Below, one piece after another: positions 4,734 to 63,289 of a stretch of DNA of 64,000 nt (position 1 is the stretch's first letter; every line of letters begins with the position of its first letter). Made by a program: the position numbers and the translations under genes. Source of the DNA: Malacoraja senta (lineage: Eukaryota); contig JAXLNO010002694.1 in assembly GCA_038087875.1 (NCBI GenBank), positions 186,001 through 250,000 on the forward strand, written 5' to 3'. Under the pieces are notes generated by a model. It had not been told where the DNA came from and did not search any database. It saw only the letters and a program-made list of their open reading frames with translations.

Positions 4734-4765
4734 CTGGTGACCCACGCCGTCCATCACGCGTCGTG

Positions 4766-5975: not shown

Positions 5976-5976
5976 G

Positions 5977-6188: not shown

Positions 6189-6332
6189 ACATAAAATATA
6201 CAACAAAAATTTCATGTTTCTACCTTAGAGAAGTACAGAGTAACGAAACACACACACAAAATCAGTTAACAATCACATTCACAAATATTACATATACATG
6301 ATCAAAATAAATGCATGCATTAAATCAATGAA

Positions 6333-6432
6333 GTCTGAAGAAGGGTCTCGATCCGAAACGTCGCCTTTTTTCTTCGCTCCATAGATGCTTGTGCCTCGCC
6401 TGCCGAGTTTCTCCAGCATTTATGTCTACCTT
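6333..6432 (+). ncRNA. Penelope pLTR fragment with minimal hammerhead-ribozyme-like core
   Basis: CTGAAGA (6335) - A GGGTCTCGATCC hairpin - GAAACGTC (6355-6362). Confidence 0.55.
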
Positions 6433-6679
6433 AAAAACGATAGAATCGCCCGATGAGTCACACAGTGCGTTGCGTTGTCGCTTCCAGGGATCACCACTAG
6501 GAGGCTTCTATCATGATCCCCATAGTAACAGCAATTTAACAGTTTAACACGCAGGGAGGTGGGCTTATACTCGCGAGGCAAAGCTGCTTGCCAAGCCGGG
6601 CAAAATGCCAAGCCTTCCCGGTTGCCCGGTGGCACTTTTGGTGGTCAATGGCACCCGGGCAACCGCTAATTTTAAGTCT

Positions 6680-33105: not shown

Positions 33106-35846
33106 CATTGCACTCCTACCATCGGGAAGAAGGTATTAGAGTTTGAAAACCGTGACCTCAAGGTTCAAGAATAACTTCATCCCAACAAACATCAACCACT
33201 TGAGATCTACAAACACCAAATAAACGATGAACTACAAAGTGTCTCAGGTGCACTAAGGACTTCAGGATCTTCGCAATAATATTGGGGGGTTTTCAATGTT
33301 TTGAATCATTTTTGTTTATTATGTTATCTTTGATTACTGTTTACTGGCCTGTTACGCTGCTGCAAGTAAGGATTTAATTGTTCCATGTTATGTACATATG
33401 ACTATTAAACACTTATGTCTCTTGATTCTTGAGAGTCAGGACCCCTCCACCTACATTCTCGACCCCCAGCTCATATCTAGCCAGATACCAGATCTGCATT
33501 CTGAATAATTGGGTGTCACGTTATTGGGGTTTTATCATATTTAACTTTTTAATCAGTGCCAAATGATTTCCAATGTACACAAGTTTGATAAAAGACATGT
33601 GTAGGAAGGAACTGCAGACGCTGGTTTACACCGAAGGTAGACATAAAATGCTGAAGTAACTCATTGGGTCAGGCAGCATTCTGGAGAAAAGGAATAATAG
33701 ATGACATTTTCGGTTTAGACCCTTCTTTGGACGAGAGTCAGGGTAGATGCAAACTAGTCCTCTATTCTCCCTCTCCCCTGGCTCAGTCTGAAGAAGGGTA
33801 TGGACCCAAAATGTCACCTATTCCTTTTCTCCAGAGATGCCACCTGACCCGTTGAGTTTAGTTTAGAGATACAGCGTGGAAACAGGCCCTTACAAAACAT
33901 ACAAACTCTGTACAGACAGCACCTGTAGTCAGGATCAATCCTGGGTCTCCGGCGCTGCAATCGCTGTAAAGCAGCAACTTTACCGCTGCGCCAACCAAAA
34001 TTTACGCCAGCATTTTGTGTCTATTTTCCATGAAAAAGTATGTAAAACGATGAGAAACTCAAGCCGTCAAGCAGGGCGGGGTCTGTCTTCCTGCTGCCAG
34101 TTGGGAGTCAGCCTCCTTCGCAATCTGCTGCTGCAGGAATCACCAGGATCCCGTGCAAATGGACAGCACTCTCAACGCACAGTAGATCTCGACGATAGCT
34201 GTTACATAGCACACCGTGGAACATGTGAAAGCCCCTTCAGAGACACCGGGGAGCAACATTTGAAAGCTTTGTCAAACTTGGCGGGGTGTAATAAATGGTT
34301 GGGTGTTGGTGGGGTAATGGTGAAGGGTTTTATTGAAGATTGAGATCAGATTAAGGGGGTGGGGGGTAGCTGCTAGTAGCTTGTAGCAGTTGTAGAAGTG
34401 ATAAGCCTATGGGATCTGGGGGCTGAGAGTACAACTCCATCAACACTGAAGAAGCTTGATAGCATCCAAGGAATGACATATGTTGGAAGCATGGTGGCGC
34501 AGCAGTAGAGTTGCCGCCTTACAGCGCTCAACGGTTACTCCTGTGGGTTGTTCTAAAGCGGAGGTTGATAGGTTCTTGATTAGTAAAAGCATCAAAGGTT
34601 ACGGGGAGAAGGTTGTGGGGGTAAAATAGATTGGCCATGATCGAATGGTGGAGCAGATTCAATGAACTGAATGGCTAATTCTGCACCTATGTCTTATGGT
34701 CTAAGGAAATGACTGCTCTCTCTCTGTGGACCAGTGATGTTGACAGGGCAACAGCAACGAGTGTCTTCTCTGTCACTGCAAATATAATTGTGTTATATGT
34801 GGACCACCCAACATCATCAAATGGTACATCTGACTCTGGGGTATGACAGCACTTCAGGTTATTGTTTTAGTTTTTGCGACAGTGAAGTCAACTTTGATTC
34901 TATAACTGCAGTTCATCTTCACATCTCCTCCTCTCCATCTCTACGATGCAATTCAGTTCAGCCTTCAGAAGGCCTCGACCCGAAACGTCACCCATTCCTT
35001 TTCTCCGGAGATGCTGCCTGTCCCGCTGAGTTAGTTCAGCATTTTGTGTCTATCTTTGAGCAAATATCTACCGGGTTCCACTCACATTTTAAACAACATG
35101 CTCCACACTGGCAGTCTCCCATTGGGGATTGAGTTCTTCTTGAGTAGAAAGCGTTCTCATTCTGCATTCCCACTTCCAATGAGGCATTTCCAAATGCCCA
35201 GTAAAGCTTTCTCTGCTCTGTCACATCACATTGCCTTGTGGGCACAAATTTGGCAGCAATGGTCTGACACACACCGCACCGGCAATGGAGTACTCCTAAT
35301 GCTGTTGCCAAATTGGGGAGGAGCAGCTCATCTCAAGCAGTCATTGAAAGGGAATTAAGAACCATGGACTTAGATTTAAGGTGAGAGGGGCAAGATTTAA
35401 TAGAAACCTGTGGGAACCTTCCTCCCTCAGAGGGTGGTGGGTATATGGACCAAGCTGCCGGAGTATGGGCACTGGGCAGCACAGTGGCACAATGATAGAG
35501 TTGCTGCCTTGCAGTGCCAGATAAATACCCAAGTTCGATCCTGAATATGGGTGCTGTCTAAAGAGAGTTTTTACATTCTCCCTGTGACCATGTGGATTTT
35601 CTCCGGGTGCTCTGGTTTCCACCCACACACCAAAGACGTACATGTTTGTAGATTAATTGGCTTTTGTAAATTGACCCCAGTGTGTATGTAGTGCTAGTGT
35701 ATGGGGTGATCACTGGTCGGCATGGACTCGATGGGACGAAGATCCTGTTTTCACGCTAACTAAAGTTAAGTAAAAGAGCTGGTTGAGGCAAGTATCATTT
35801 CAGCATTTAAATGACACTGGACAGGTAGTTCAGTGGGAAAGGTTCT

Positions 35847-36173
35847 AATAATAATAATAATGGATGGGATTTATATAGTGCCTTTCTAATACTCAAGGTG
35901 CTTTACATCGCATTATTCATTCACTCCTCAGTCACACTCGGTGGTGGTGAGCTACTTTTGTAGCCACAGCTGCCCTGGGGCAGACTGACGGAAGCGTGGC
36001 TGCTAATCTGCGCCCACGGCCCCTCCGACCACCACCAATCACTCACACACATTCACATGCAGGCAAAGGTGGGTGAAGTGTCTTGCCCAAGGACACAACG
36101 ACAGTATGCACTCCAAGCGGGATTCGAACCGGCTACCTTCCGGTTGCCAGCCGAACACTTAGCCCATTGCGCC
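35847..36173 (-). mobile_element. tRNA-derived SINE (second family, young), L2-type tail
   Basis: Pol III A-box GGCGCAATGG, B-box GGTTCGAATCC, GTGTCCTTGGGCAAGACACTT body and (ATT)n tail. Near-identical to 60571-60923. Confidence 0.85.
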
Positions 36174-36757
36174 GTTCTGAGGGATAAGGGCCAAACGCAA
36201 GCAAATGGGACTAGTTCAGATGGAACATCTTGGCCAGAATGGACGAGATGGGCCGCAGGGCCTGTTACTGTGCTGTATGACTAAGATGAAAACCTCAAAC
36301 ATCAAAATTAAATTCTGAGTAAAATGTAACACAAAGTTGAAACATTGCTAAAAGAGTTTGTAACAAAGTAGCAGAAGACTCAGCAACCAGTCACTACAAT
36401 GGAGGCAACACTAAGCTTGATGAATAGGAAGGAACTGCAAATGATGGTTTAAACTGAAGATAGACACAAACAGCTGGAGTAACTCAGCTGGTCAGGCAAC
36501 ATCTCTGGAGAAAATGAATAGGCGACATTTCGGGTGGAGACCCTTCTTGATGAGGTATACAGCCACTCATCATTGTAACAGGTAGAAGCTTCATCCAGTT
36601 TTCAGATTAGGACCGGATGTTCATCTGGAAAGGAGAAATGAGAAGAGATTGGATCAGAAATGAGAAGAGAGTTTGTCACATCATCGAGTCTTAGTGAAGG
36701 AGTCTATGCGCTCACTCGCCTGTTATCACACCTGGCCTCTCTCCTCATTGCTCCTCT

Positions 36758-36843
36758 TTACAATGCTCCAATGATCATCACAAGCGTAGCCATGAGCACC
36801 AGCATGGAACTAGCTCCAAATGCCTCATGTGACCCACCAACAC
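36758..36843 (-). CDS. Class I-like exon 5: linker and hydrophobic C-terminus ([28 protein letters not shown])
   Basis: CTAAT branch-like site and CAG acceptor (weak pyrimidine tract), phase 1. It is the only hydrophobic candidate exon I found downstream of alpha3 and sits in a unique island between repeats. Confidence 0.6.
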
Positions 36844-39800
36844 CTGCCCAGCAATCAAATATAGTAGACATTAGGTGAAGTACATAGATCATAAGGTCAT
36901 AAGCGATAGGAGCAGAATTAGGCCATTCGGCCCATCAAGTCTACTGCCATGGTTGCTCTATCTCTCCCTCCTAACCCAATTCTCCTGCCTTCTCCCCATA
37001 ACCTCTGAAACCTGTACTAATCAAGAATCTATTTATCTGCCTTAAATATATCCACTGACGGCCTCCACAACCTTCTGTGGCAAAACATTCCTCAGATTTG
37101 CCACCCTCTTTATATGTCTTAGAGTCATACGGCATGGAAAACAGCTACCTTTCCCAACTCTTTGGTATAGTTAGTGTGGTTTATTGTCACGTGTACTGAG
37201 GTAAAGTGAAAACTCATCCTTGCCAACCATGATGTCCCATCTCAGCTAATCCTATTTGTCCATGTATCAGTCCAAGTATCTTAAATGCTGTTATAGTACC
37301 TGCCTCAACTACCTCCCCTGGCATTTCGTTCTATATACCCACCACCCTCAAAGTCCCTCAGCTTCCTATTACATCTTGTCACTCTCACCTTAAACATATA
37401 CCCTCTGGTTCTTGATTCCCCTATCCTGGATAAAAGACTGGGCATTCACCCTATCTATTCTCCTCATGATTTATTCACCTCTATAAGATCACCCCTCAGC
37501 CTCCTGTGCTCTAAGAAGTTCTAGCCTGCCTAACTTCTCCCGATGCTCAAAATATACAAAGAAAAAGCTGGACTAACATCGCGGGTCAGGCAGCATCTCT
37601 GGAGAAAAGGAAAAAGTGATGCTTCGGGTCAAGACCCTAATTCAGATATCCCTATGCTCAGTCTCTTGAGTCCTAGCAACATCCTTGTTTATCTTCTCTG
37701 CGCTTTTTCCATCTTAATGACATCCTTGTTATGGCAGGGTGACTAAACCTGAACACAATACTCCAACTGTGGCCTCACCAACATCTTGTACAAATGTAAC
37801 GTAACATCTCAACTTCTATCCTCAATACTGTCTGATGAAGCCCAATATACCAAAAGCCTTCTTTACTGCCCTAAATACCTAAAGTACTCCCAGATTCCTC
37901 TGCTCTATAACACACTCCAGGGCCATACCAATGATGGCACTGGAGGGGATGCAGGTGAGATTTACAGAGACTGAGTAAATTAGCCATAGAGTCATCCAGA
38001 ACAGAAAAAGGCCCTTTGGCCCAATTCGTTCTTGCTGACCAAGATGACCCAGTTGCCCATGTCAGGAATATTTCAATAGGCTATGGTTCTTTAGTTTATT
38101 TTTAGTTTAGAGATACAGCCATCCGCACATTAACGCTATCCTACACATACACGAGATGCAATTTACAATTTTACACTTAAACCAGCCAATTAATGTACAA
38201 ACTTTTACGTCTTAGGAGTGTGGGAGGAAATCGAAGATCTCGGAGAAAACCCATGCGGTCACGGGGAGAGCGTACAAACTCCATACAGACAACTCCCATA
38301 GTCGGAATCGAACCTGGGTCTCGGGCGCTGTAAGGCAGCAACTCTCCCGCTGCACCACCGTTCCTCTCAGGAAGGTGAGGGTTGGATTAATATGGGACCT
38401 GAACAGAGTAATAGGGAAGACCTACTGTCCTTAATAGAGCAGTCAAAACAAAATGAAAGATTGGATGTGATCGGTAGGATTCGGAGGAGATTGAAACATT
38501 TTCCACAAATGGTGGGAGGGGTCAGGAAATCATTGCCAGTAGAGTGTGATGGAGACAGAAATACTGACCACATTTAAACTGGCTAAATATGTACTTGAAT
38601 TGCCGAGCTATGAACCCAGTGCTCGAAGATGGGATGAATGATAAGATACGATAGAACTTTATTCATCCCAGGAGGGAAATTGATCTGCCAACAGTAATAA
38701 AAACACAAAATATATGAAACATGAAATTAAAGTGACTAGTGGAAAGGATTGAGACTGTGCAAAGATTGGGGAGGGGGGAGGGTGGGGGGGAGTGGAGAGT
38801 CTGTCTCAGTCTACCCCACAACAGAAGAGGTCACAGCCTCAGAATTAAAGGACGTTCTTTTAGGAAGGAGATGAGAAGGAATTTCTTTAGTCAGATGGTG
38901 GTGAATCCGTGGAATTCTTTGCCACATAATGATGTGGAGGCCAAGTCAGTGGATAATTGTATGACAGAGATAGATAGATTCTTGATTAGTAAGGCTGTCA
39001 GGGGTTATGGGGTGAAGGCAGTAGAATGGGATTAGGAGGGAGAGATAGATCAGCCATGATTGAAAGGTGGAGTAGACTTGATGGGCTGAATGGCCTAATT
39101 CTGCTCCTATTACCTATGAAATGAGTATGGGAAGAACTCAGCGGGTCGGTCAGCATCTGTGGAGGGAAATGGACAGGCAATACTTCAAGTCGAAACTCAT
39201 GCTTCGGATTACAGCATCTGAAGTTATTTGTGTCCATTCCCTCCACAAGTGCTGCCTGATCCGCTGAGTTACTCCAGCACATTGTGTTTTGTTCAGGATT
39301 CCGCTGTACTTCCTTGTGTCCGACCCCAAACACCACCTGTTCCATTTCCCTCCACAGCGGCAACCTGACCATCTGAGTCTCTCCAGCGCTTTCTGTTTTG
39401 CTCAACATCCCAGCATTTGGGGTTTCTTGTGTTTGACTGCAAACAAAGGAGATCGTGATGGGCTTCAGGAAGTGAAGAAGCACAGTCTTTTACCCAGAGT
39501 AGGAGAATCAAGAACCAGAGGAGATCAGTTTAAGGTGAGAGGGGAAATATTTAATAGCAATTTGAGGGGCAACTTTTTCCGACAGCAGGTGGTGGTTATG
39601 AAATGAGCTGCCAGAGGGGGTAGTTAGGCAGAAATTATCACAGCTTTTAAAAGACATTTGGATAGGTACGTGGACAGGAAATGTTTAGAGGTATAAGGAC
39701 CAAACATGAGCAGGTGGGGATGGAGTTGCTGGCGCACCTTGGCTGGCATGGGCAAGCTGGACCGAAGGGCCTGTTTCCGTGCTTTATGGTTCTATGACTG

Positions 39801-42800
39801 TAACTGTGGACATGAACAAGGTCTGCTATACATGTTGGACTGTTCTCAAAGCAAGGTTGCTGAAGAAAGGTCTCGACCCGAAACATCACCCATTCTCTCC
39901 AGAGATGCTGCCTGTCCCACTGAGTTACTCCAGCATTTTGTGTCTATCTTCGATTTAAACCAGCATCTGCATTTCCTTCCTACGCAAGGTTGCTCAAGTG
40001 TTACCACAGACCATCCGAGACTAATGATGTTGTAACTATGCCCATATTGTATCTATGTCTTACTGCATGGCAACCAACGCATCTTCCATTCTTACTTCAT
40101 GAACCCTTCCATCCTTTGAACAAAAATAGCTTCCAAGTTGCATCAGACGGGGGATTCCAGTAAAATAGTCAAACTGGTTTTGCAGCTGGCATCAGAACAC
40201 TGATAAAGGATATTTGATCTAGTTACTCTGTTTCTCTTACCACAAATGAAACCTAACCTTCTGAATGTTTGCAGCATATTCTGCTTTTATTTTAGATTTC
40301 CAGCATCTGCAGTTGTATTTAATTGATTTTGAAATCTGTTGAACAGGTACCACCACATGTGTAAGAAAGAACATTGTTGATGTATGTAAGTAACGCCAGG
40401 AAAATACAATGGGATCTTTAAATACAATTTTTGGGCTCCAGAATGAACTAATATAATGGGCAAACTCATTTAGCATACCAGTTTTGAAAAAGTTATCGAT
40501 TTCTAATTTTACTTCGGAGTCACGTGAGTGACTACGTGAAGAACCCCGCCAGTGCGCCTGCGCGTCATTTACGTCAGACGCCTTGTCGCAAACGGACATG
40601 AGGAGCAGAGCTCCTCTAATGGATTTGTAGTTTTTTAACTACAAGGTAAGTAAAAACTTTTTTCAGTATTTTCAGGTCCGTTTACTGTGGGGATTTATTC
40701 CACAGACGCCATGGAAAAAACGGGCAGGGGGAAGAGGCGAGCGACTCAGCCGACAGAAAGTCGGGAAAGTCGGGAGTCAGCGGTTAGCGACCAACCGCCT
40801 CTAACCCCGGTACAATCGCCAGCGGTTAGCATAGCGACTGTGGACCTGGGGCAGTCAACGCCTGTCGGGCGCAAGGCCAAGTTCGAATCGAAACGGGCCA
40901 TGGAGGAGGAGTCCCAGGAAATGGAAATGGAAGAAGCTCCAGGGCTAGATACTGCTTTTAAGCGTATTGCCCAAATGGAAAGCCTGCTACATAGGCTGTT
41001 GGAGCGAAGCACACTCAGGTAAGAGTGTACTGAAATCCAAGCTGCTGGAAGCAGCTCAACAGCTCCTGGTACCGGGCTGATAGAATGCACCCTCAGGGAT
41101 GAGGAGCGTGCCACGGGTCATGAGATTTCAGACCCCGACTCTGATGGTGAGGCTGTACAAGGCGAAGAACGGCAGCTGCTAGATGTTCCACCCCTGGCAG
41201 TACGATTCGCTACCCCGTCAGGGTCAGGAGAGCCATTAGGAGAAGAATTGGCCTCCCTAATAAATTACTTGGTTTCCCATCAGCTGGAACAGCAGGAGAT
41301 GGATGAGAATGCAAGAAAATATGAGTTGAGTATGACTATGAGAACTCAAGAATTGAAATTGCAGAGAATATTAAAGCTGCTGGGTTCTGGAATAACTGCT
41401 TTTGCCAGAATAGCGGATAAAAGCCAAGATATGATGGAGTTGCATCAGGAAGCACTGGGGTTGCTATGCAGCACCCACGTCGAGATTAATTGTCTGAGGA
41501 AAGGTGCTATACGGCCTACTATGAATCCGAAATTCGCAGCACTCTGCAAACCAAGTAATGTACAATTACCCAACTTACTCTTTGGAGAGGATCTCGGGAG
41601 ACGTATTAAAGAGTTGGAAGATGAAGCGAAAACAGGATTGATGAAAACATCAATGGTTGTAAAGTCTGTAAAGAGGAAGTATCCTTTCAGACGTCATACG
41701 GATCCTGGACCAGGACCAAGTCGCTCATTAACGCAGGGACGTAGATGGCGGCCTGCAGCGGGAGCAAGAACCGGTGGGGGTGCTTCCGGGAGAATCCATG
41801 GATCTCAGAGTACTCAAATGACTCAAGAGGTAGGTGGCCCTGGTTCCCATGGGAACATACTAAACCGGATTAAGTCCAAAGGTTGGAGGCAGATTATGTC
41901 TCTTCTATAACAATTGGAAGAAGATTACTTCAGATGTGATAATTCTGAATAGTATACAAGGATTTCAAATTGAATTCAATCCAAATTATGATTTGCCTGT
42001 CCAGCATGTTCCTAGCAGAACTCTCCACTTTGCACAAAAAGAAGTGATGGAGGTTCAAGCTGCATTTCAAACCCTATATATAAAAGGTGTTATTGAAGAA
42101 TCAGTCTACCAAATTCACCAATTTGTGTCAAATATATTCCCTCGATCAAAAAAGGATGGAGGATGTAGGATTATTCTAGACTTGACAAGTCTGAATCCTT
42201 TTGTTTAATTTAAACATTTTAAAAGGGAGACATTTGTGACTGCCAAACCACTTATTTCAGAAGCATGTCATATGGCAACTATAGATTTAAAAGATACATA
42301 TTATTCAGTGTCTGTTTACTCAGAAGATAGGAAGTATCTTAAATTTACATGGATGAACCAGTTATGGCAGTTCAAAGCTTTGCCTAATGGGTTAACGTCC
42401 GCTCCCAGAATATTCACAAAATTGTTAAAACCAATTCTGGGGTTGCTGAGAAGCTAGGGGCATGTACTAATGGCATACTTGGATGATGTCCTGATTATAG
42501 GAAGGACAAAACAGTCAACAGAAGCATCTGTTGCAGTTGTGAAATCAACTTTTGAAAGTTTGGGGTTTCCAATTCATCCAAAGAAATCAAGGTTAACACC
42601 ATGTACCTCGATTGATTATTTGGGGTTCACAATTGATTCAGTCCAAATAAAAATTACTTTGCCCAGTGAAAAAAGGGTGGAGTTGATTAAAGATTGCAGT
42701 AATCTGTTAAACCAGCAAAAACCCTCAATCAGACAGGTGGCTCGAGTACTGGGAAAATTAGTAGCAGCATTCCCAGCAGTCCAATACGGACCATTACATT

Positions 42801-45800
42801 ATCAACAGCTGCAGAGAGTTAAAGAACAGGCACTGAGAATGCATACTGGTCATTTTGATATAACCATGCAACTAACAACAAATGCTGTTTCTGAGTAATG
42901 AGACAGTTAAGCATGTTTTCCTAGAATGTAAAAAGTATAGGGTAGAAAGAAAAGTATTGTTTGTTAGACTGACAGGACTTGGAGTTGAGGCTTTTTCTGT
43001 TTTATCTTTGTTTGGACACAATGAGAAACATCAACTGATATCCAGGGCTGTTCTTCAATTCCTGCAAGTTACAGGACTGTATGTAAGAATTTAGTTCAAA
43101 CTTTGACCTGTGGAGGGCAGTAATACGCTTAGCAGCGTCTACACTGCCGGAATCCTACAAGAAGAAGAAGATGAAGAATGCTGTTTCTGATCTGCAGTGG
43201 TGGATTCTACATGTCTCAAGCAGTTCCAGCAAAGTGCTGATTGAACAACCTTCCATGATATTACAAACTGATGCCAGTGCACTAGGATGGGGTGCAACTG
43301 ACTTAGCATCTAGCTGCGGAGGCAGATGGAATCAGGAAGAGTCATTGTTACTGCAGACATGGGGAGTTCACTATTTGGAGTTTTATGATGTTTCTATGGA
43401 CTCCAAGCTTATTGTTCTAACACAACTAAAAGGCATGTTCAAGTTCAAATTGATAAACACAACAGCAGTTGCCTATATTAATGATATGGGTGGAATCAAG
43501 TCGGGGTCATGTGACAAAATGGCTAATCAACTTTGGTCTGGGTGTATTGAAAAGAACATTTGGATTTCAGCTATCTATCTACCAGGTAGAATGAACACGA
43601 TAGCAGACACCAGGTCACGAAAGTTCCATGATAATAAGAATGGATGTTGAATCGAGAGGTATTCAATGATATAGTAATCAGATTTGGAATGCCCGACATC
43701 GACTTGTTCGCATCTAGACTGAATCATCAACTATCGAGATATGTCTCATGGGAATCAGATCCAGGAGCAGTGGCGATTGATGCTTTCTCGCTACATTGGG
43801 GTGGTATGTTTTCATATATATTTCCACCTTTTTGCCTCATAAGCTGATGTTTGCTTAAAATCAGGCAAGATGCTGCTTCAGGGGTATTGGTAGTACCAGA
43901 TTGGCCTACACAGCCATGGTACCCGTTGATATTAGAATTAACAACACAAATGTTGATGAAAGTCCCAAAAAGGAGTAATTTATTGCTGCACCCTGTAACA
44001 GGGGAACAACATCCATTATATGATCGTTTGGATTTGTTGATTTGCAGGTTTTAAGAAGGCCTTTTCTGGGGCGAGGACTGTCTGAGCGTCCTGTGGACAT
44101 GCTTACGGCAGCCTGGAGGAAGAGCACTCAAAAACAGTACCTTTCTTATATTAAGAAATGGGAAGAGTTCTGTGTACAAAAGAATGTGGAATATAGTACT
44201 GCAGATATTTCAAATGTTTAGAATTTCTGTCATAACTTTATTATGATGAAGGTCTGAGTTGTAGTGCAATTAATCCAGCCAGAAGTGCATTGTCCTCATA
44301 TTTCGTTCTGGATTCAGAAAGAAACTCACGGGTCACACCCACTTGTTTCCAGACTAATGAAAGGAATCTTTAATTCCAAACCACCGAAACCTAGGTACAT
44401 AACAATCTGGGATGTAAGTGTGGTACTGAAACTACTTCGTGAATAGTCACCAAGTGTGTCTTTACTTTTGGCCAAGCTCAGTATGAAAGTAGTCATGCTT
44501 ATGGCATTAGTGACAGCACAACGAGTGCAAACACTTGGAAAATTACAAATAGACAGGATGGAAGTAACTGAAGACAAGGTTACATTCTATATCTATGACC
44601 TACTAAAGCAAAGTAGGCCAGGTGTGACAATGATTTAAAATTGTGCTGGCAGCATATCCAAATGATCCTTGTCTCTGTGTTAAGACATATTTGTTACAAT
44701 ACATGGAGGTCACAAAGAATTTGAGAAATACGGAAACTGGGTTGTTGATCACACACAAGAAACCACACAAGAGAGTTTCAGTACAGACTATTTCCAGATG
44801 GATAAATGAAGTCTTAACAGCTGCTGGTATTAACACTGATGTTTTTACGTCTCACTTGCCTAGGGCAGCAGAAACGTCGGCGGCCAGGGCGAAAGACGTC
44901 CCCTGTCGACCATATCCTCGCAGCCGCCGGGTGGTCCAATGAGTTGATGTTTCAACATTTTTACCATCGGCCTATTGTTAAATGCGGGATTGTTTGCAGA
45001 AACTATTTTAAGTTCTGTGTAAATTCCTCTGGTTTAAAGGGGATCTGATTCATTTCATTATTGAAATGAATTACTGCATTTGTGGTACAAATGTTATTAT
45101 GAATGCATGATTGATTATTCTCGTTCCGAGTCAATCAATGCAGTGAGAAGCCGGGATTGATCTACGGCATGAAATCACAAAGCTTTAAAATCTTCACGTA
45201 GTCACTCACGTGACTCCGAAGTAAAATAGTAAGATTAAACGAGAACTTACCTAAGTTTGAAGTTTGATCTTTATTTATGAGGAGTTACGTAGGTGATTAC
45301 GTGCCCACCACGACCCTACCCTCTATCATAAAGGTCAGATGGAAGTTCTTGTATTACTCGTTTTATTATGAGACTATATTACTTCGGTTGTTGTTTTTTG
45401 TGATTTCACACCGCTGCTTTGAAGATTGACGCGCAGGTGCACTGGAGGGGTTCTTCACGTAATCACCTACGTAACTCCTCATAAAATAAAGATCAAACTT
45501 CAAACTTAGGTAAGTTCTCGTTTAATCTTACTATTCGGCTCTGCTGCAGCTGGTAGAGTCATAGTCGTAGAGCAAAGAAACAGGCCCTTCAGCCCAACTT
45601 GCCTTTGCCAACCAAGATGCCCCATCTACACCCGTCCCACCTGCCCAAGTATGGCACATAACCCTTTCCTACCCATGTGGCTATCTAAAGATCTGTTATG
45701 GCACCTGCCCCCACTACCTCTTCTGGTAGTTCTTTCCATAGAGCTAACATCCTCTGTGTAAAAAAGTTGCTCCTCAATTTCTATTAAATCTCTCTCACCT

Positions 45801-48800
45801 TGGAACCATTTGTTCTTGATTCCCTTACTCTGGTTAAAAGACTATGCATTTGCCTTATCTATTCCCCTCATGATCTTATACACCGCTGTAAGATCACCCC
45901 TCTGAGTCCTGCGCTCTAAGGAATAAAGTCCTAACCTGCCACACCTCTCCCTATAACTCAGGCCCCAAAGTCCTAGCAACATGCTCATCAATCTTCTCAG
46001 TACTCATTCCAGCTTAATGACACCCTTCCTATAGCAGGGTAATGGGGTGGAGCTGCTGTCTCACTGCACCAGAGACCCGGGTTCTATCCTGATACCTGGT
46101 GCCATCTGTGTGGCGTTTGCACATTCATCCTGTGACTGAGTGGGGTTTCTCCGGGTGCTCCGGTTTTGTCGAACACCCCAAAGACATGTGGGATTGCCCC
46201 CAGTGTGTAGGGAGTGGATGAGAAAGTGGGATAACACAGAACCAACGTGAGTGAGTTTAGTTGAGCTTGGCTTAGTGGTGTTTAGTATATTGTCTGAGAT
46301 ACAGTGAATGAAAAGCTTTTTGATGCATGATAAAGTCTGATTAAAGATAGTCCAAGGATTGGAGGAATGAATGATCAGTGGTCAGCGTGGACTGGGTAGG
46401 CAAAGGGCCTGTTTGCATGCTGGATCTGTCAATCAATTAAAAATGTTAAGTGTAAGAATTAACTGCAGATGCTGGTTTACACTGAAGATAGACACAAAAC
46501 GCTAGAGTAACTCAGCGGGTCAGGCAGCATCTCTGGAAAAAGTAATAGGTGATGTTTTGGGTCGAGACACTTCATCAAATTTTTGTCAAAAATATTTCTT
46601 ATTTTTGGGCTGTATATTTGACCGACAGCTCAAAGGAAAGTTAATTCTGGGACTCTAAGGAAAGTCAATGCCGGGAAACAGAGCATCCCATTGTAAGGAC
46701 TCACTGAGCTACCATGTAAATTGCATTCTGCCCCTCCCCAGTAGTTGTAGCCCCAGGCTGAGGAGCAGCAAGGACATTTTATTTCACAATGCACTATCCT
46801 TTTTGAAGATGGGATTTCCCCTTTATCATCCAGGTTCCTTCTGTTTGGCCCAAGCATCAGACTCCGTCTGAAGAAGGGTCTCGACCCATTCCTTCTCTCC
46901 AGAGATGCTGTCTGAGTTACTGCAGCTTTTTGTGTCTATCTTCGGTTTAAACCAGCATCTGCAGTTTCTTCCAGCCCTTTCAACACAGTTGCGGTGGCGC
47001 ATTGGTAGAGTTGCTGCCTTGTAGCGAATGCAGCGCCAGAGACCCAGGTTCGATCCCGATTAAGGGGGCTGTCAGTACAGAGTTTGTACGTTCTCCCCGT
47101 GACCTGTGTAGGTTTTCTCCGAGATCTTCGGTTTCCTCCCACATTCCAAAGACGTACATGTAGGTTAATTGGCTTGGTAAATGTAAAAATTGTCCCTAGT
47201 GGGTGTAGGATAGTATTAATGTGCGGGCATTGCTGGTCGGCGTGGGCCGAAGGGCCTGTTGCCATGCTGTATCTCTAAACTAGATTGCCCACATGTTTCA
47301 TGTGCCATAATGCTCCTGGATTCGAGGGTATTAACTGTAATGAGAGGTTGGACAAACTTGGATTGTTTTCTCTGGAACGTCAGAGGCTGTGTGTAGACAT
47401 GATACCAGTTTCTAAAATTATGACAGACATAGATTTGGTGGAGAGTGAGAATATTTTTTTTTTTCCAGCATGGAAATGACAAAGACTCGAGGGCATATCT
47501 TAAAGGTGAGAGGGACAGGCTTTAAAGGAGATGTGCGGAGCATGTATTTTTTTTTAAACATAGGGGAGTGGTGGGTGCCTGGAATGCACTGCCAGGGGCT
47601 GTGGTGGTGAGGCAGATGTGATAGAGGCATTTAGGAGGCTTTTGTATCAGCACATGGATATGCAGAAAATGGAGCTCTGTGGTTCACATGCAGGCAGAGG
47701 AGTTTAACTGGTATTGTATTGTATATCTTTATTGTCATTTCCTGAGTATTCGCATACCCAGAGGAAACAAAAAAAGGTTCCTCAACCAGTGTCCATTTCA
47801 GTGTGCAGTAAAAAATAAATAGAAGTAAAAATACATATATCATGAACAAATTAACACTCTACTCTACTAAACATCAACAGGCGTTCCGATCGGCAGCGGC
47901 ACGACAGTGGCTCTGCTGCAGTGTGTCCAGGTTGGTGGTTGGTGCACGATACTTTGGCAGGGGACAAAGTCCGTTTATCAGTCTTATAACCTGCGGGAAG
48001 AAGCTGAGGAGCATCCTGCTGGTTTTGCACCTAATGCTCCGGTACCTCTTCCCAGATGGCAGGATGAAGAATATGTGATGCGATGGGTGGTAGGGGTCTT
48101 TGATGATGGAGATGGCTCTGCTGATACATCTCTTCCTGTATATGTCCAGCAGGAAAGGGAGTGGAGCACCAATAATCCTGCTGGCGGTCTTCACAATCCT
48201 GTCTAGTTGGTGCCGTTCGTACGCCTTGCAGCTCCCGAACCAGGAAGTGATGCTGTAGGTTAATGTGCTCTCGATTGTCCCCCTATAAAAAGTTCGTAGG
48301 TGTGTAGTGGGGAGACCTGCTTTACGTAGTCTTCGGAGAGGGTGTAGTCGCTGCTGGACTCTCTTGACCAGTGCTGTGGTGTTGGTCGTGGACGTCAGGT
48401 CATCTGACAGGTGGAGTCCTAGGAACTTCACGCTGTTGACCCTTTCCACATCAGCTCCATCGATGTGCAGAGGTGTATGGTGTTGTTTTCCCGCCCTCCT
48501 GAAGTCAACCACCATCTCCTTAGTTTTTCCCACGTTGAGAATGAGGTTGTGGGATTTGCACCATCCTGTGAGCAGCTCCACCTCCATCCTGTATGCCGAC
48601 TCATCATTGTCACTGATGAGACCCACCACTGTTGTGTCATCAGCGAACTTGTTGATGAAGTTGTTGTTGAGTCTAGCAGTACAGTCGTGTGTTAGCAGAC
48701 TAAACAGCAGGGGGCTTAGGACACAGCCTTGGGGCGAGCCAGTGCTCACGGCTATGGTTTTTGATGTCCTACTGCCCACCCTGACTGTCTGCTGCCGTTG

Positions 48801-51800
48801 TGATAGGAAGTTCAGGACCCAGTTACATGTGCCAGCATCAACCCCCAATAGCTCCAACTTCTCCACCAGCTGCTGCGGAATGATTGTATTAAAAGCAGTG
48901 CTGAAGTCTATGAAGAGGATCCTGGCATAAGTATTTTTCCGATCAAGGTGTGACAGTACGAGGTTCAGTGTTGTTGAGACTGCGTCCTCTGTGGATCGGT
49001 TGGCTCTGTAGGCGAACTGCAGTGGGTCTAGGTCGGCAGGTAGACTATTTTTGATATGCTGCATAACCAGTCGCTCAAAACACTTCATTACTATGGGTGT
49101 TAGAGCCACTGGTCGAAAGTCATTATGGCAGGCTGGGTTTGGTTTCTTCGGGACAGGGACGATGGTGGCACTCTTAAGACAGTTGGGCACTACTGCCTGG
49201 CTGAGTGAGATGTTAAAAATGTCTGTTAAGACATCTTTCAGTTGCTGAAATATACGGTGGTATACGATACGATAGAAGTTTATTTATCCCAGGAGAGAAA
49301 TGGGATGGCCGACAGTCATAAAACACAACAAGATACATGAAACATGGAAGTGACGAGTGGAAAGGATTGGGGATGTTAAAAAACTGGGGATGGAGGGAGG
49401 GGGGATGGGGGAGGTTGAGTCAGTCTACCTTACGATAGAAGGGGGAGAAGTTATGGTTTGGAAGCCACAGGAAAAAAGGATCTGTGGTGTTCTGTACTGC
49501 ATCTTGGTGGAACTAGTCTGTTGCTGAAGGTACTTCTCAGGTTGACCAGTGTGTCATGGAGGGGATGAGCTGTACTGTCCAAGATGCTTCGCAATTTGAG
49601 GAACATCCCTCCAAGACCACTTCTCACGAATCCAACTCCGTCCCAAGGACGGAGCCAGCCTTCCCAGCACACGGCAGCGAACAAGACGGCACTGGCCACC
49701 ACCGATTGGTAGAACATCTGCAGCATCTTACTACAGACGTTGAAAGAGCATCATGTTCAGCATGGACATTGAGGGCTGAGGGCCTGTTCCTGTACTGTAC
49801 TGTTTTATGTTACATGTCATTCAAACCCCATTTGTTCCTTCCCCATAAATTACGGTGAATTCCCCAATACTCTGCCAGATTTCCATGAAAGATGCTCCGA
49901 GTCCACGCCGACCATCGGTCACCCGTTCACACTAAGCTCATAAGTCCTAGGAGCAGAATTAGGCCATTGGCCTACCAAGTCAACTCTGTCATTCAATCAT
50001 GGCTAATCTATCTTTCCCTCTTAACCCCAGTCTCCTGCCTTCTCCCCATAACCCCTGATACGCTTACTGATCAAGAATCTGTCAATCTCCGCCTTAAAAA
50101 TATCCATTGACGACTTCCACAGCCGTTTGTGGCAATGAATTCCACAGATTCACCACCCTCTGACTAAAGACATTCCTCCTCATCTCCTTCCTAAAGGCAC
50201 GTCCTTTTATTCTGAGAGTATGGCCTCTGGTCCTCAACTCTCCCACTAGTGGAAACATCCTCTCCACATTCACTCTATCCAGACCTTTCATAATTCAGTA
50301 AGTTTCAATGTGGTCCCCCCGCATCCATCTAAACTCCAGCGAGTACAGGCCCAGTGCCTTCAAACAGTCATCATATGTGAACCCAATCATTCCTAGAATC
50401 ATTCTTGTAATCCTCTTCTGGACCCTCTCCAATGCCAGCACATCCTTCTTCAGAGGAAGGGATGTTTCCTTAAAAATATCCATTGACGGCCTCCACAGCC
50501 TTCTGTGTCAATGAATTCCACAGATTCACCACCCTCAGCGTTCTCGTCGCGCCCCCCGTCAGTACCCAGGTTCGCCTGGGGAAGCCAATGATCCTTCCAG
50601 CAGACTAAATTCTACAAGACGATGCCTGAGAGCCAAGTCAAAGAATCCTAGTCATTATCCCAAAGCCGAAAGCAGCAACAACGACCAGCCTCAAGAGCAC
50701 CTAGCAGTTGGACCTGCTCTCCGAATACTACAGCTGAATATTGAAGGCCTCTCTGCAGACATCTTCAACCCACCCACTGCTCGACTTCCATCTAGACGAC
50801 CAATTTGGAAGAACCCACCACCAGCTGATTTCACCACCCAATCAGCTTGAATAAAGGAATGGGAGTCCAAGGACGTCCCAAATAAACATCTGGTGTCAGA
50901 CCCAACACTACCGGTCCCTGGCACCAATCTCCCAAGGAAGCAGTGGACGACGCTGAATAGATTCAGGACTGGACATGGCCCCTGCTTGGCCAGCCTTATC
51001 AAGAGGCAACTGCTTGGCTAAAGGACTTTGCATTCGCTAAATAAATAAATAACCACCCTCCGACTAAAGAAATTCCTCATCTCCTTTCTACAAGCAGGAG
51101 TGAAGCAGATTGTGGACAACATGCAGTGACTTACCTCCCCTCAGTGTCATTGTCAGAATCTCTGACAGGCTGCTGTGCTGGACCTGACAGCTGTACATAT
51201 TCAGATCTTGGCCGTGTAGCTCGATGAGCAGTTCCATCCTGTACGTGTCATCGTGGTTTGGTAGAAGGGTCTCGTTTATGTCATTGGAGACGGCCTGCCC
51301 ATTCCTCAGCCAAGTGGCGTTGATGGCGCGGGGGTAAAAGGGAGTGATGACACACCGGAGACTCTCGCCTTTGTCAGCCATCGGCTCCCTTTTCAACACT
51401 GTCACCCCTGGAACAACTGGGGAAGAATGGAGAGTAACGTCACTAATTTAAACCAGAGGACATTATCTTACAGATGGAGATTATGCACACCAGCCTTGCT
51501 GTCTCACCGTTTCACTCACAAACTAGTTAGCTCGTTCAGGAAACATAGTGGAGTACATGCCCCACTCAGTATCAATGGTGCCAAAGTAGAAATGGTTCAG
51601 ATCTTCAAGTTCCTTGGCATTAATATTACCAACGATCTATCACAGACCAACCACATTGATACGGCAGCCAAGGAGGCACACCAACGCCTCTACTACCTTA
51701 GGAGACTCAGGAAATTTGGCATGACTCCAATGATTCTTACAATCCTCTGCAGAAGCTCCATACTGTCACTGCTTGGATTGGGAACAGCTCTACCCAAGAC

Positions 51801-54800
51801 CACAAAAATTGTAGATGTAGCCCAGACCATCACACAGACCAGACTCCCCATCACTGACTCCACCTACATTTCACGCTGCCACAGAAAAGCAGCCAACACA
51901 ATCAAAGACTTGTCCCACCCCCGGTCATTCCATCTTCTCCCTGCTCCCGTCGGGCAAATGGTACAGAAGCTTGAAAGCTAGCACCACCACCACCTCTGCT
52001 ACCAGGCTTCTGAGCGGTCCTTCCATAAGCTAGGGTACTGTCCAATTCACCTCTACCCCATTGGATTCTGTCTATTGGACTGATGAACTGTATCTTCCCC
52101 TTAGCACTATCTATTGTACTTGAGTTTAACTTTATTATATTTATGTCCAGTATAATCTGATCTATCTCTCCCTCCTCACCCCATTCTCCTGCCTTCTCCC
52201 CATAACCTCAGACACCCGTACTAATCACTGGAATTTAGAAGGATGAGAGGGGATCATGTAGAAACATATAAAATTATAAAAGGACTGGACAAGCTAGATG
52301 CAAGGGAGTCCAGAACCAGGGGCCACAGTCTAAGAATAAAGGGGAGGCCATTTAAAACTGAGATGAGAAAAAACTTTGTCACCCAGAGAGTTATGAATTT
52401 GTGGAATTCTCTGCCACAGAAGGCAGTAGAGGCCAATTCACTGGATGAATTTAAAAGAGAGTTAGATAGAGCTCTAGGGGCTAGCGGAATCAAGGGGTAT
52501 AGGGAGAAGGCAGGCACGCGTTACTGATTGTGGATGATCAGCCATGATCACAATGAATGGCGGTGCTGGCTCAAAGGGCACCTATTTTCTATGATTCTAA
52601 TCAAAAAACTGTCTATCTCTGCATTTTTAAAAAATCCACTGAATTGGCTTCTACAGCCGTCTGTGGCAAAGAATTCCTCTGATCATCACCCTCTGATTAA
52701 ATACATTTCTCCTCATCTCCTTCCCAAAAGAACATCCTAGGAAGCGATGACTAGTCCTAGACTCTCCCACCAGTGGAAACATCCTCTCCATGTCCACTCT
52801 ATCCATGCCTTTCACTGTTCTGCATGTTTAAATGAGGTCCCTCCTCATTCTTCTAAACTCCAGCGAGTACAGGCCCAGTGCCGGCAAATGGTCATCATCG
52901 ATTAACCCACTCACTCCTGGGATCAATTTTGTCAACCTCCTCTGGACCCTCTCAAGAGCCAACACATGCCCAAAATTGCTCACAATTGATCAGCAAATCG
53001 CTTGCCATCCCAGGTCAAAAATTCCCTTTTTGCCCCTGATCAGCATTGCCCCAGAAATCCCTCACCAACCCAGATCAGGAACCATTACAATCCTGGACCA
53101 GGTTATCATTCACTGTCCAGAGAAGGAGATCTCTCACCATCAGATCATAAGCTCCCTCACCGTCCTAGATCATAGATCCCTCATTGCCCCAGATCAGAAG
53201 GCCTCTGACAATTCTGGATCACGATATAATTTACTGTCCAGACCGGGAGATTCTTCGCTGTCCAGACCAGGAGATCTCTCACCACCAAGTCAGTGGATAT
53301 ATTTAAGGAAGTGATAGATAGATGTTCAAGAAGGAACTGCAAATGCTGGAAAATCGAAGGTAGACAAAAGTGCTGGAGAAACTCAGCGGTTGCGGCAGCA
53401 TCCATGGAGCGAAGGAAGTAGGCAACGTTTCGGAAGAAAGGGTTCTGAATTCTGAAGAAGGGTCTCGGCCCGAAATGTTGCCTATTTCCTTCGCTCCATA
53501 GATGCTGCCGCACCCGCTGAGTTTTTTCCAGTACTTTTGTCTACCAGTGATAGATTCTTAATTAGTATGGGTGTCAGAGGTTATGGGGAGAAGGCAGCAG
53601 AATGGGGTTAGCAGAGAAAGATAGATCAGCCATGATTGAGTGGTAGAGTAGACTTGATGGGCCGAATGGCCTAATTCTGCTCCTATCACTGATGATCTTG
53701 ATCAGAAGCTCCCTCACCATCCGCGATTGGGAAATCATCCCAGATCAGTGCTCCCTCACCATCATGGATGGGAGCTCCTTTGTTGTCTGGGTCAAGAGAC
53801 ACCTCACAGTCCCAGAGTGGAAGCTCCCTCACCACACTATATCGGAGCTCCCTCACCTCCCTGGATCAGAGCTCCCGCTCCGTCACACACAGGGGCTTAA
53901 GTACTGAGAAGCCCTACCTACCTCTCCTCTCGAGTGCTGCGTCACCAAGCCGAAGAGCTTTCTGTAAGTCTGGAATGCAGCTGTTGTTCACTGCTTGAAC
54001 TGCAGCATTATTAAAGAAAATCTGTTGGTTGATTGGATCGTTCAATAATTTAAGGATACCAGTGGCAGAACAGTTCACTGCGACCAGATCACAGTCAATC
54101 TCACCGAGGTCTTGGATGGCAAACTTTACAAACAGATGGGTCATATTTTCAGACTGTGTGCAGCCCCAAAGCCCCTGGAAGTAGCTGATACCTGTAAAGA
54201 AGCAATTGTCATTAATGAGAAGCCATTGCCTACTGTAGATTGGTTATTGCATGTGAACCAATCATAGTAGAGTAGCATCACTAACCCCACCTTACTGTAT
54301 GATTTATATTAACACCCACTTCCTACATTAAGTAGTCTTGGAAGCGGTAGTGATGAATTAACAACTAACAACCTGCTGTACCGCTATACTATGTGTTGCA
54401 ATTAAAGATGACTTAATCATATGTGTAACATAATCATTTACACCTACCAAACACGGAAATGCGACATGCACTGTGTGACCACGAGATGCAGGGAGCAGCA
54501 GACTGTAGTGATGGAATGATGCTAGAGCAGGGGCTGAGGATGGAGTGAATGCAGCATTGTCGGTGGTGGTACAGCACACAGTGTCTCAAACAATCTGTGA
54601 TCACGGTGAGCAAATGTGTACAGTCAGGGTGAGTGGGTACACAGGGGAATGATCATGGCGAGGGGCTGTGTGTGCACTCACATCCTTGTATGCAGAGCAG
54701 GGGATCAAATAGGAGAGGGTGTACCGTGCATCATTGTGGACAGAGTAGGGGATAACAGTGAGGTGGTGTACTGTGGATCAGGGTGTGTATAGAGGAGGGG

Positions 54801-57800
54801 ATTACAGTGAGATGATGTGCATTGCATCATTGAAATTCTAATTGTAATTAATTTATTCGCCAAGTATGTAAAAACATGCAAAGAATTTGATTTGCCATTC
54901 AGTCATACCAAAAAAGCAACAAGACACATAAAACAACATAAAAAGTAACATAAACATCCACCACTGTGATGGGATGGAAGGCAATAGCGTATTATCTTCT
55001 TTCCTGCTTTTCTCTCGCGGTCGGGGCAGTCGAACCATCCGCAGTCGGGGTGATCGAAGCTCCCGCGTCGGAGCGATTGAAACTCCTGTGGTTTGAGCTC
55101 CCGAAGTCGATCCCTAACCAAGAGACCGTCAGCTGCACGATGTTAGGCCGCAGTGTGGACGGATTTACGATACGGAAAAAGTTGCATCTCCGACGAGGAA
55201 AGAGACAATAAATGTTTCCCCCACCCCCCACATAATTTACACAACGGACTAAAAACAACAAAAGAAGAAAAGGACAACACAGACGTGGCAAGGCTGCCAT
55301 CGTACATCGTTAATCCATTGCGTGTATAATGCAGGGGATAGTGAGAGATGGTGTACTGTGGATCAGTTTATACAGTGCAGGGGATAGTGAGAGATGGTGT
55401 ACTGTGGATCAGTATGGGCAAAGCAGGGGATCACAGTGAGATGGTTTACTGTGGATCAGTATGGGCAAAGCAGGGGATCACAGTGAGATGGTTTACTGTG
55501 CATCAGTGTGGGCAAAGCAGGGGATCAGTGAGATGGTTTACTGTGCATCAGTGTGCATAGAGCAGGGATTACAGTGAGCGATGATGTACTGTGCAGGCGA
55601 TAGTGAGAGAGAGTGTACTGTGCATCATCGTGGGCAGAGAAGGGAATCACAGTGAGAGATGGTGTACTGTGGATCAGTTTATACTGCAGGGGATCACAGA
55701 GAGATAGTGTACTGTGCATCTGTTTCTACAGTGCAGGGGAATCACAGTGAGAGATGGTGTAGTGTGCATCAGTGTGTGTATAGAGCAGGGCGATCGCATT
55801 GAGACCGAAGTTGTCGGCACAGCGGCAGAGTTGCTGCCTTTTACAGTGTCAGAGACCCGGGTTTGATCCTGACAATGAGTGCAATGGGTACACTGTACAG
55901 AATTTGTACATGCTCACTATGACCACGCGGGTTTTCTCCGGGTGCCTCCGGTTTCCTCCCATATTCCAAAGCAGGGAAAGGAATTTCTGCTGCTTCATCA
56001 GATCCATCTGATAGCGGTTATTTTGGCAACGTGAAATTTACTGTGAGCCTGAGAGGTGAGAGGAGGACAAACACCTACCAAGCATTAGGCCAAATAAACT
56101 AAATTGTTTAGACACAATCGTGTGAATGGTGTCTGCGATCTCCTTCTGCCGTATCCAGTACTCAGCCGTGAAGCCGTTCGCAATCCACTGCTGCCTGGAT
56201 GCCACTTCTTCGAGGGAGTTGTCGTAGTAATCTATCTGCAGATCATCCAACATCCCAACCCTGGCGAAGGCTGGCAGGTCAGGAACACTGAGGGAGTAGG
56301 TGCCGAAATATATCAAGCTGTGGGAATCTGAGCAAAGGACACAAGGGAAGAGTGTTAGAAACAGACCAAACAAAAAGGTCGAATGCCCAGAGAATACCCA
56401 ACGGCTGAAGGGCGGCACGGTGGTGTAGCAGTAGAGCTACTGCTTTACAGCGCCAGAGACCCAGGTCCAATCCTGTCTGTACGGAATTTGTACGTTCACC
56501 CCGTGACCTGCGTGGGTTTTCTCCGATATCCTCGGTTTGGTCCCACCATCCAAAGACGGACAGGTTTGTAGGTTAATTGGCTTGGTATAAATATAAAATG
56601 ATCCCTAGTGTGTGTAGGGTAGTCTTAATGTACGGGGAATCGCTGGTCGGTGCAGACCCGGTGCCTCGAAGGGCCTGTTTCTACGCTGTATCTCTAAACT
56701 AAACTAAACCTCCAGAGCCTGATGGAATAGGTTAGGGTTTAGATTTATCATCGTCACGTGTACCAAGGTACAGCAAAAAGTTTTGTTTTGTATGCTATGC
56801 AAACAGACCAGACATACTATAGATAAATAAAATTAATTCAAGTTGAGTACAACAGATAGAGCATAGGGGAAAATGCTGAAAATATGGTTTAGACTTTACG
56901 TTTTAGAGATATAGCCCTTTTAGGAAACAGTCCCTTCGGCCCACTGTGTCTGTGCCGACCAGCAATCACCCCATACACTAGCAGTACCCTACATGACAGT
57001 ATCCTATTTTCAATTTTACCAAAGCCAATTAACTGACAAACTGAAGCACCCGAAAAATACCCACGTGTTTTCAGGGAGAACGTACAAACTCTGTACAGAC
57101 AGCACCCGTAGTCAGTCTCTGGCGCTGCAAGGCAGCAGCTCTACCGCTTCGCCACTCTTCCCAGCATTGATGTAATAAAAAGGAACTGCAAATGCTGGTT
57201 TATACCAAAGATAGACAGAAAATTGCTGGAGTAACTCAGCATATCAGGGAGCATCTCTGGAGAAAATGGATGGTGATGTTTCGGGTTGGGACCCTTCTTT
57301 AGACTGATTGTAAGTGGAGTGGGGGGGGGGGGGACTGGAAGAAAGAAAACACCAGGACAAATCAGGGCTGGCAACATATGACCTCAGGTATACAAAAGTG
57401 CTGGAGAAACTCAGCGAGTGCAGCAGCATCTATGGAGCGAAGGAAATAGGCAACGTTTCGGGCCGGAACCCTTCTTCAGACGTTGAGCTTCAGCGGGAGT
57501 CTGAAGAAGGGTTTCGGCCCGAAACGTTGCCTATTTCCTTCGCTCCATAGATGCTGCTGCACCCGCTGAGTTTCTCCAGCACTTTTGTCTACCTTCGATT
57601 TTCCAGCATCTGCAGTTCCTTCTTAAACATATGACCTCAGGCAGGGTGGTTCCCTGATAGGCCAAATGTTGGCAAGAATGGTCTATCTTTAGTTCTTGGC
57701 ATTGACAAGCAAGAATTTCATTGTCCTATCTGGGACACGTGACAATAAAACTCTCTTGACTCTTGACTCTCTTGTAAGTGTAACAGTTTCATGAACAAAG

Positions 57801-63260: not shown

Positions 63261-63289
63261 CGTGTACACCTGAGAAATCATTCTGCCCA

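Follow-up and report, generated by a model that had tools for sequence, protein, structure and literature searches.

Positions 36843-36758 on the minus strand of the 64-kb stretch of skate DNA that we analysed (hereafter, the window) are almost certainly exon 5 of an intact six-exon gene belonging to the UFA lineage of MHC class I, with five of its six exons coding and a stop codon, used as described below, that leaves the protein without a cytoplasmic tail. The best explanation for this arrangement, and one that we consider likely, is that the tail-less end of the protein would act as a GPI-attachment signal. The evidence comes from the gene model and its splicing, from the C-termini of relatives in sharks and rays, and from the pattern of substitutions among three skates.

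Gene model

The UFA-type gene extends from 62993 to 36491 on the minus strand (Table 1). Joining the leader, alpha1, alpha2, alpha3 and exon 5 gave an open frame of 320 amino acids, which reproduced the length of the model in the initial annotation of this DNA. The leader exon encodes 25 residues of a hydrophobic, putative signal peptide that matches the leaders of two skate proteins, P0168 of A. radiata and P0169, and is conserved with the annotated orthologues. Exon 5 is read in phase 1 from a CAG acceptor whose sequence upstream of 36843 is ...gattgctgggCAG (minus strand), and the TAA stop lies at 36760-36758. Its first codon is split, with G at 51135 and GT at 36843-36842 together making GGT (Gly), just as the initial annotation had written for the alpha3/exon 5 border. 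Exon 6 continues into a repeat, and repeat-level depth starts below ~36515.

A tblastn search of the 64-kb window found no other class I exons. A scan of open segments on the minus strand from 51134 to 20000 likewise found no second hydrophobic exon of comparable quality, since no other candidate combined an acceptor with a connecting peptide and homology. Alternative transmembrane (TM) exons at 50700 and 38805 were rejected, their frames being short or repeat-derived.

Intron 4 is ~8.5 kb long in A. radiata vs 14,291 nt in the window, and a stretch of ~5 kb in the window intron (roughly 45560-40509) is missing from that of A. radiata. Much of the length difference is due to this ~5-kb stretch, which has a retroelement inside it. 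That element, at 41248-45048 on the plus strand, has multiple ORFs and RT-like sequence and lies within the part missing from A. radiata. A second retroelement copy in intron 4 carries a 438-aa RT-type ORF at 47874-49190 (minus strand). At 63278-63977 on the minus strand we observed overlapping long frames in a tandem repeat rich in Gly/Met/Glu/Ile or Gly/Trp/Arg (GMEGIGMEGS...), with a GC skew of -0.47; this repeat is probably a satellite and not a gene.

Splicing of alpha3 to exon 5

The junction 51135->36843 had been predicted in the initial annotation, and homology bore it out in three ways: through a contig from a related skate, through the A. radiata orthologue, and through the absence of a rival exon. 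The contig (L001) is a 1336-nt intron-less Logan contig and the source of protein P0169. It maps to the window as six colinear blocks (Table 1). Across the alpha3/exon 5 junction it reads ...GAGGGGAG / GTGTTGGTGGG..., where the slash marks the border, and a longer read across the same border is ...ACACTGAGGGGAG / GTGTTGGTGGG.... Positions 24-258 of L001 map to 62993-62765, so that the 5'UTR extends to at least 62993.

Table 1. Exons and introns of the UFA-type gene in window coordinates, followed by the aligned blocks of contig L001
Feature	Position	Strand	Remarks
Leader (signal peptide) exon	62765..62840	-	direct read; plus first base of next codon; GTAAGA donor
alpha1 exon	56079..56327	-	249 nt, phase 1; splice sites read
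alpha2 exon	53922..54191	-	270 nt, phase 1; splice sites read
alpha3 exon, Ig C1-set	51135..51416	-	282 nt, phase 1; ends ...AGG GGA G, then GTAAGT
Intron 4	36844..51134	-	14,291 nt, rich in transposon copies
Exon 5 coding part, candidate GPI-attachment signal	36758..36843	-	(G) + 27 aa + TAA
Exon 5 remainder, 3'UTR	36720..36757	-	38 nt; in-frame read RGAMRREARCDN(R)
Small 3'UTR intron	36625..36719	-	95 nt; GC-AG, strong pyrimidine tract, CAG acceptor
Exon 6, wholly 3'UTR	36491..36624	-	L001 1172-1308 maps to 36627-36491, 95% identity
L001 block 1	62993-62765	-	5'UTR + leader
L001 block 2	56330-56076	-	alpha1
L001 block 3	54192-53922	-	alpha2
L001 block 4	51418-51133	-	alpha3
L001 block 5	36849-36720	-	exon 5; L001 1042-1174
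L001 block 6	36627-36491	-	exon 6; 95-nt intron skipped

The A. radiata RefSeq protein P0168 was 84% identical to the 320-aa model, through the last residue, and its CDS could be rebuilt exactly from the homologous exon borders in the A. radiata locus (L003). The window and this locus are colinear across the introns at 91-92% identity. Because colinearity extends through the introns of both loci, we regard the window gene and the gene for P0168 as orthologous.

In principle, L001 could be a retrocopy rather than an mRNA, but near-identical contigs were obtained from two runs and its size is typical of an mRNA. We concluded that the orthologue is transcribed in the related skate (the P0169 cluster comprises 42 member sequences from Logan assemblies). 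A search for RNA of the window's own species yielded no transcript evidence: over 34900-37900, the runs X1, X3, X14 and X15 were DNA-like, showing repeat-level depth, unspliced contigs across the acceptor and zero joints to alpha3. At 36755-36815, up to seven distinct short contigs from X14 and X15 cover the hydrophobic-tail segment with a summed depth above that of the flanks, which suggests that the X14/X15 organism carries several copies or alleles of the hydrophobic-tail exon.

Membership of the UFA lineage

On homology, the window gene belongs, as a skate copy, to the elasmobranch UFA lineage of non-classical MHC class I, because the nurse shark UFA structure 8gm8 was the best PDB match for each of alpha1, alpha2 and alpha3. 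The alpha1 exon matched Pfam MHC_I (E 1.2e-7) and, in the PDB, 8gm8 (UFA, E 1.9e-16) ahead of 9ch4 (UGA, 3.5e-11) and 6lup (2.7e-9). The alpha2 exon gave no Pfam matches and had 8gm8 (UFA) as its sole PDB match (E 2.4e-13), and alpha3 matched Pfam C1-set (E 4.7e-15) with 8gm8 as its top PDB match (E 6.6e-26). According to the Foldseek output, 8gm8 was released on 2024-11-27 under the title "Crystal structure of shark nonclassical MHC CLASS I, UFA", and 9ch4 bears the same title with "UGA" in place of UFA. The AlphaFold model of the orthologue through which these titles were retrieved was poor (mean pLDDT 60) and was used solely for that purpose.

A protein search with alpha3 reached the elasmobranch relatives and, through them, a family of annotated proteins, one of whose stingray members is labelled 'CD1d-like' by NCBI. 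This search, with alpha3 alone against a library of 1.84 billion proteins, returned mostly multi-Ig proteins, and the relevant matches were chosen by identity. UFA has been mapped to the MHC-Ib cluster next to UDA/UEA (PMC10751288) and is described as CD1-like in its groove and lipid binding (PMC10751288; PMC12562908). A 2025 review, citing a personal communication, states that the lipids bound by UFA and UGA resemble those of CD1d (PMC12562908).

These results bear on the initial annotation, which had noted a degenerate groove and, together with the GPI layout, taken it to suggest a stress-ligand-like or raft-associated molecule. Given that the window gene belongs to the UFA lineage, such a groove is the lineage's normal state and a trait of a probable lipid binder. 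The stress-ligand-like reading itself was not supported, since alpha3 is intact, with a full C1-set domain in contrast to ULBP/RAE-1, and since the UFA lineage is reported to be CD1-like.

Conservation of the tail-less C-terminus

The initial annotation had called for a comparison with the C-termini of relatives, and for this we assembled 24 relatives from 13 species. The batoids were three skates, the sawfish Pristis, two Mobula and the stingrays Hemitrygon and Hypanus; the sharks were Cetorhinus, Carcharodon, Mustelus, Heterodontus, Heptranchias and Chiloscyllium, covering the lamniform, carcharhiniform, heterodontiform, hexanchiform and orectolobiform orders. Results showed the same tail-less ending throughout: all 24 relatives had a stop at the homologous position, straight after a short hydrophobic stretch and without cytoplasmic residues. 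Examples are the C-termini of Pristis (KGGVGEPRGAGPMLGLMAVLAMVIGAV), Mobula (KGGVGEPHGAGPMLGLMTVFAIIFGVM), Cetorhinus (KSGIKGVSETIHSGPVLGLLLAIMGGVI) and Heptranchias (GSGVGGSKEAIRSAPVLGLVAVLATIAGLI). An ending found in 24 relatives is neither an assembly accident nor a recent truncation.

Among the three skates, the coding part of exon 5 differed at 4-7 positions per pair, and every difference was non-synonymous and conservative (S/P, E/D, S/Y, I/V, A/T). One expects such a pattern for a segment that would be selected for its composition and not its sequence.

Two annotated models depart from this ending. In the electric ray Narcine bancroftii, isoform X2 of a UFA-type protein (P0166) has a hydrophilic alternative end, ...RADSNSIEIKQREDVKEAR, which replaces the hydrophobic tail; this could reflect a soluble splice variant or an error in the model. 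At 836-9327 of the Chiloscyllium punctatum locus L005, the GenBank model GCC17844.1 (P0030) runs into intron sequence and omits the true last exon, which lies at 9191-9277 and encodes ...GVGRVSHRIWPGPALCLFTMLAMAVGAV-stop.

A predicted GPI-attachment signal

The established layout of a GPI signal combines small residues with a Pro/Gly-rich polar spacer and a moderately hydrophobic end, after which no cytosolic residue follows. The exon and the layout first read from it (small residues, a spacer, a hydrophobic tail of ~15 aa and no cytoplasmic domain) were confirmed, and the layout is conserved in the 24 relatives. We scored attachment sites with a heuristic rule set of our own, not a trained predictor, which allowed G/A/S/N/D/C at omega and G/A/S at omega+2, excluded P/W at omega+1, and looked for a short spacer followed by a hydrophobic tail. 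In the window protein, this heuristic scoring placed the candidate omega residue at Gly293 (GVG triad) or Gly295 (GGS). The GVG lies 27 and the GGS 25 residues from the end, in agreement with the earlier placement of the site ~26 aa from the end. The spacer comprises 4-6 residues by our tail definition, or 8-10 when counted to Met306, and is followed by a 15-residue hydrophobic stretch and then directly by the stop.

The same heuristic scoring placed G-V-G/S or an equivalent small triad at 22-27 residues before the C-terminus in almost every member of the family, the variants being G-V-S in lamniform sharks, S-G-G/G-G-S in Heterodontus and G-A-G in one Mobula copy. Spacers across the family are short, polar and Pro/Gly-rich, and the tails comprise 13-19 residues with a mean hydropathy of ~1.8-2.4. 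For comparison, we took class I/Ig-type proteins of 280-420 aa from the protein search. These mostly had hydrophobic windows with a hydropathy of ~2.8-3.4, and nine of the 11 continued for 10-73 residues beyond that window, with one of the 11 ending there. We concluded that the GPI-signal layout is a conserved and ancient trait of the UFA lineage, and that the UFA end is quite probably a signal for GPI attachment and not a tail-less anchor. A description of the UFA membrane anchor, or of a GPI-linked chondrichthyan class I molecule, was not found in the literature searched, and primary UFA work may lie outside it.

The protein could instead be a tail-less type I membrane protein, in which the hydrophobic end spans the membrane and no GPI is added. 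The uncharged C-terminal run of 21 residues in skates is long enough for a membrane span, and a K, R or E located 2-4 residues from the end in P0015, P0151, P0170, P0171 and P0172 could mark a cytosolic boundary, the K or R resembling a stop-transfer charge. In sharks, however, the uncharged run is merely 16-18 residues and begins with a helix-breaking S/G-P; the hydropathy of the tails is well under that of the TM segments of other class I/Ig-type proteins, and most members have no flanking cytosolic residues. The small-residue triad is also conserved at the right distance, and MICA*008 offers a precedent for a truncated class I TM segment that led to a GPI anchor (PMC10316631). For these reasons we consider a membrane-spanning end unlikely.

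Stop codon, 3'UTR intron and proposed origin of the predicted signal

The stop codon is TAA in the window and TAG in A. radiata, L001, Pristis and Chiloscyllium. At this position, TAG is also read in four further DNA runs from close relatives (36758 T>C on the plus strand). The initial annotation had proposed that raw reads without the TAA would count against it; the codon in the four runs is TAG, still a stop, and because the codon varies yet stays a stop, the objection that reads lack the stop fails.

Genomic DNA of A. radiata, Pristis and Chiloscyllium has one and the same order downstream, namely the stop, 36-42 nt, a donor, an intron of 85-100 nt and a UTR exon. The post-stop segment of the exon measures 38 nt in the window, 41 nt in A. 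radiata, 36 nt in Pristis and 42 nt in the bamboo shark. In skates the reading frame stays open past the stop and encodes a basic sequence (RGAMRREARCDNR), but this frame is not conserved in the sawfish and the bamboo shark; an open run of 12-14 codons after the stop has a chance expectation of about one half. Readthrough of the stop, or a coding extension, was therefore rejected, because the post-stop frame is not conserved and the segment lengths in the sawfish and the bamboo shark (36 and 42 nt) differ by non-multiples of three from those in the skates. The post-stop reading RGAMRREARCDN(R) may be a relic of what was once a basic cytoplasmic segment.

In the window, the 3'UTR intron begins with a GC donor (AACAG/GCGAGT, 36718-36719), with the rest of the donor consensus in place. 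A. radiata has GT here, as do four further DNA runs from close relatives (36718 G>A, plus strand). The difference is due either to a GT>GC change specific to this lineage or to an allelic variant, and retention of this intron would leave the protein unchanged.

A short intron directly after the TM exon is usual in class I genes, where it serves the cytoplasmic exons, and for this reason we read the 3'UTR intron as a fossil of a TM-plus-tail arrangement. Nonsense-mediated decay (NMD) usually needs a distance of ~50-55 nt from stop to junction; the 36-42 nt found in four species fall below this, which would explain why the 3'UTR intron has long been tolerated. We infer a history in which a nonsense codon would have arisen at the end of an ancestral TM exon, before the split of sharks and rays, and would have left the short intron and exon downstream of it as 3'UTR. 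The broader proposal is that the whole UFA lineage would have been GPI-anchored before sharks and rays diverged, by a signal derived from the TM-exon nonsense codon and with the intron kept as an NMD-safe 3'UTR; we judge the case for it to be evenly balanced.

Evidence for a working gene

Among the three skates (window, A. radiata and L001), dN/dS was ~1.2-1.3 overall. For alpha1/alpha2 (56327-53922), the window compared with the A. radiata or L001 orthologues gave values of ~2.3-2.5, with a dS of 0.03-0.05 vs an intron difference of 8-9%. The alpha1/alpha2 values suggest that the platform of this class Ib gene, supposedly non-polymorphic, is under diversifying selection.

We found no nonsense changes in the 51-81 substitutions per pair; 3.4% of random changes create a stop, so that the chance of this outcome is 0.06-0.17. 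The density of gaps in the introns (~5.5/kb) predicts ~5 indels in the CDS, where one was observed, 12 nt long and in frame. This sole indel gives the window four extra alpha3 residues (EPMA, ~51385-51374) relative to both other skates (LKRDKGEG).

A decaying or non-functional gene, with the stop as a disabling truncation and neutral drift in skates, would account for some of these data. The overall dN/dS would also be compatible with relaxed constraint, exons and introns have diverged to a similar extent, and the donor of the 3'UTR intron has changed from GT to GC. We regard decay as improbable, however, on several grounds. The stop position is common to 13 species across sharks and rays and so is not a recent lesion. 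The five coding exons all keep open frames and good splice sites, nonsense changes are absent, and the single in-frame indel compares with ~5 expected. The orthologue is transcribed in a related skate, and the alpha1/alpha2 dN/dS above 2 fits diversifying selection better than drift. Because of the lack of nonsense changes, the deficit of indels and the transcription of the orthologue, we interpret the skate UFA gene as a working gene whose protein is evolving fast, probably in a diversifying mode.

A secreted or shed form, whose hydrophobic end would serve neither as a stable anchor nor as a GPI signal and whose ectodomain would be released, fits the short and moderately hydrophobic tail and the hydrophilic alternative end of the Narcine P0166 isoform, but it is very improbable, since an unprocessed hydrophobic C-terminus usually leads to ER retention and degradation and since a tail composition kept for several hundred million years argues for use.

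Proposed mechanism and significance

Under the preferred reading of a GPI-attachment signal, the leader peptide would carry the chain into the ER, and the last 24-27 residues would serve as the signal. GPI transamidase would cut at the small triad (G-V-G; omega Gly293 or Gly295) and link the alpha3 stalk to the GPI lipid. The product would be a class I ectodomain of the beta2-microglobulin type, held in the outer leaflet without a cytoplasmic tail and, as a consequence, with none of the tail-borne sorting motifs of the CD1 type.

CD1 relies on cytoplasmic tails to reach endosomes for lipid loading. If the oldest known CD1-like lineage is GPI-tethered, then lipid sampling in early jawed vertebrates would have used another route, for which raft/GPI-protein recycling, surface loading and phospholipase shedding are candidates, and UFA would be a lipid presenter without tail-directed endosomal sorting. 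The change from a class I TM exon to a GPI signal would also have arisen independently and been kept for several hundred million years. To our knowledge, this change has been seen in mammals solely as the isolated cases of Qa-2 and MICA*008. If the prediction is true and the molecule undescribed, UFA would be the first antigen-presenting molecule with an MHC fold and a GPI link from outside the mammals. For UFA expression work, the signal marks the probable natural end of the ectodomain, and PI-PLC should release the predicted GPI form.

Comparison with known systems

The nearest solved relative of all three skate ectodomain exons is nurse shark UFA (8gm8). It shares ~42-45% identity with the skate proteins, and the extra Cys pair of skate alpha2 is present in both. 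The crystal construct stops before the C-terminal segment and is thus uninformative on the anchor. We found many UFA copies in rays, in contrast to the single- or low-copy state given in a review (PMC12562908). The A. radiata protein P0168, annotated as 'MHC class I-related gene protein-like', has five coding exons, a C-terminal end and a 3'UTR intron as in the window. It differs in having TAG and not TAA, an extra AGA after the stop, a GT and not a GC donor, four fewer alpha3 residues and a shorter intron 4.

CD1 isoforms are TM proteins, and it is the cytoplasmic tail that directs their endosomal traffic. Whereas CD1 has a TM segment and a tail with sorting motifs, the UFA lineage ends at the hydrophobic stretch. 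ULBP/RAE-1 have neither alpha3 nor beta2-microglobulin. They consist of the platform only, in contrast to the skate protein with its complete, spliced-in C1-set alpha3, and nothing in our data indicates stress induction. ULBP/RAE-1 combine an MHC-fold platform with GPI anchors (PMC2211882).

The closest parallels in principle are two mammalian molecules. Qa-2 is the textbook GPI-linked class I molecule with a shortened TM segment (PMC2483932), and MICA*008 is a class I-like molecule that is truncated in the TM segment and "rescued" by a GPI anchor (PMC10316631). In both, the TM exon is cut short, the cytoplasmic tail is missing and GPI is attached; for the skate protein, GPI attachment is predicted. 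Qa-2 has kept its alpha3 domain, as has the skate protein. Qa-2 and MICA*008 are independent mammalian events in lineages unrelated to UFA, and whereas MICA*008 is a single allele, the tail-less end of UFA is fixed across an ancient lineage.
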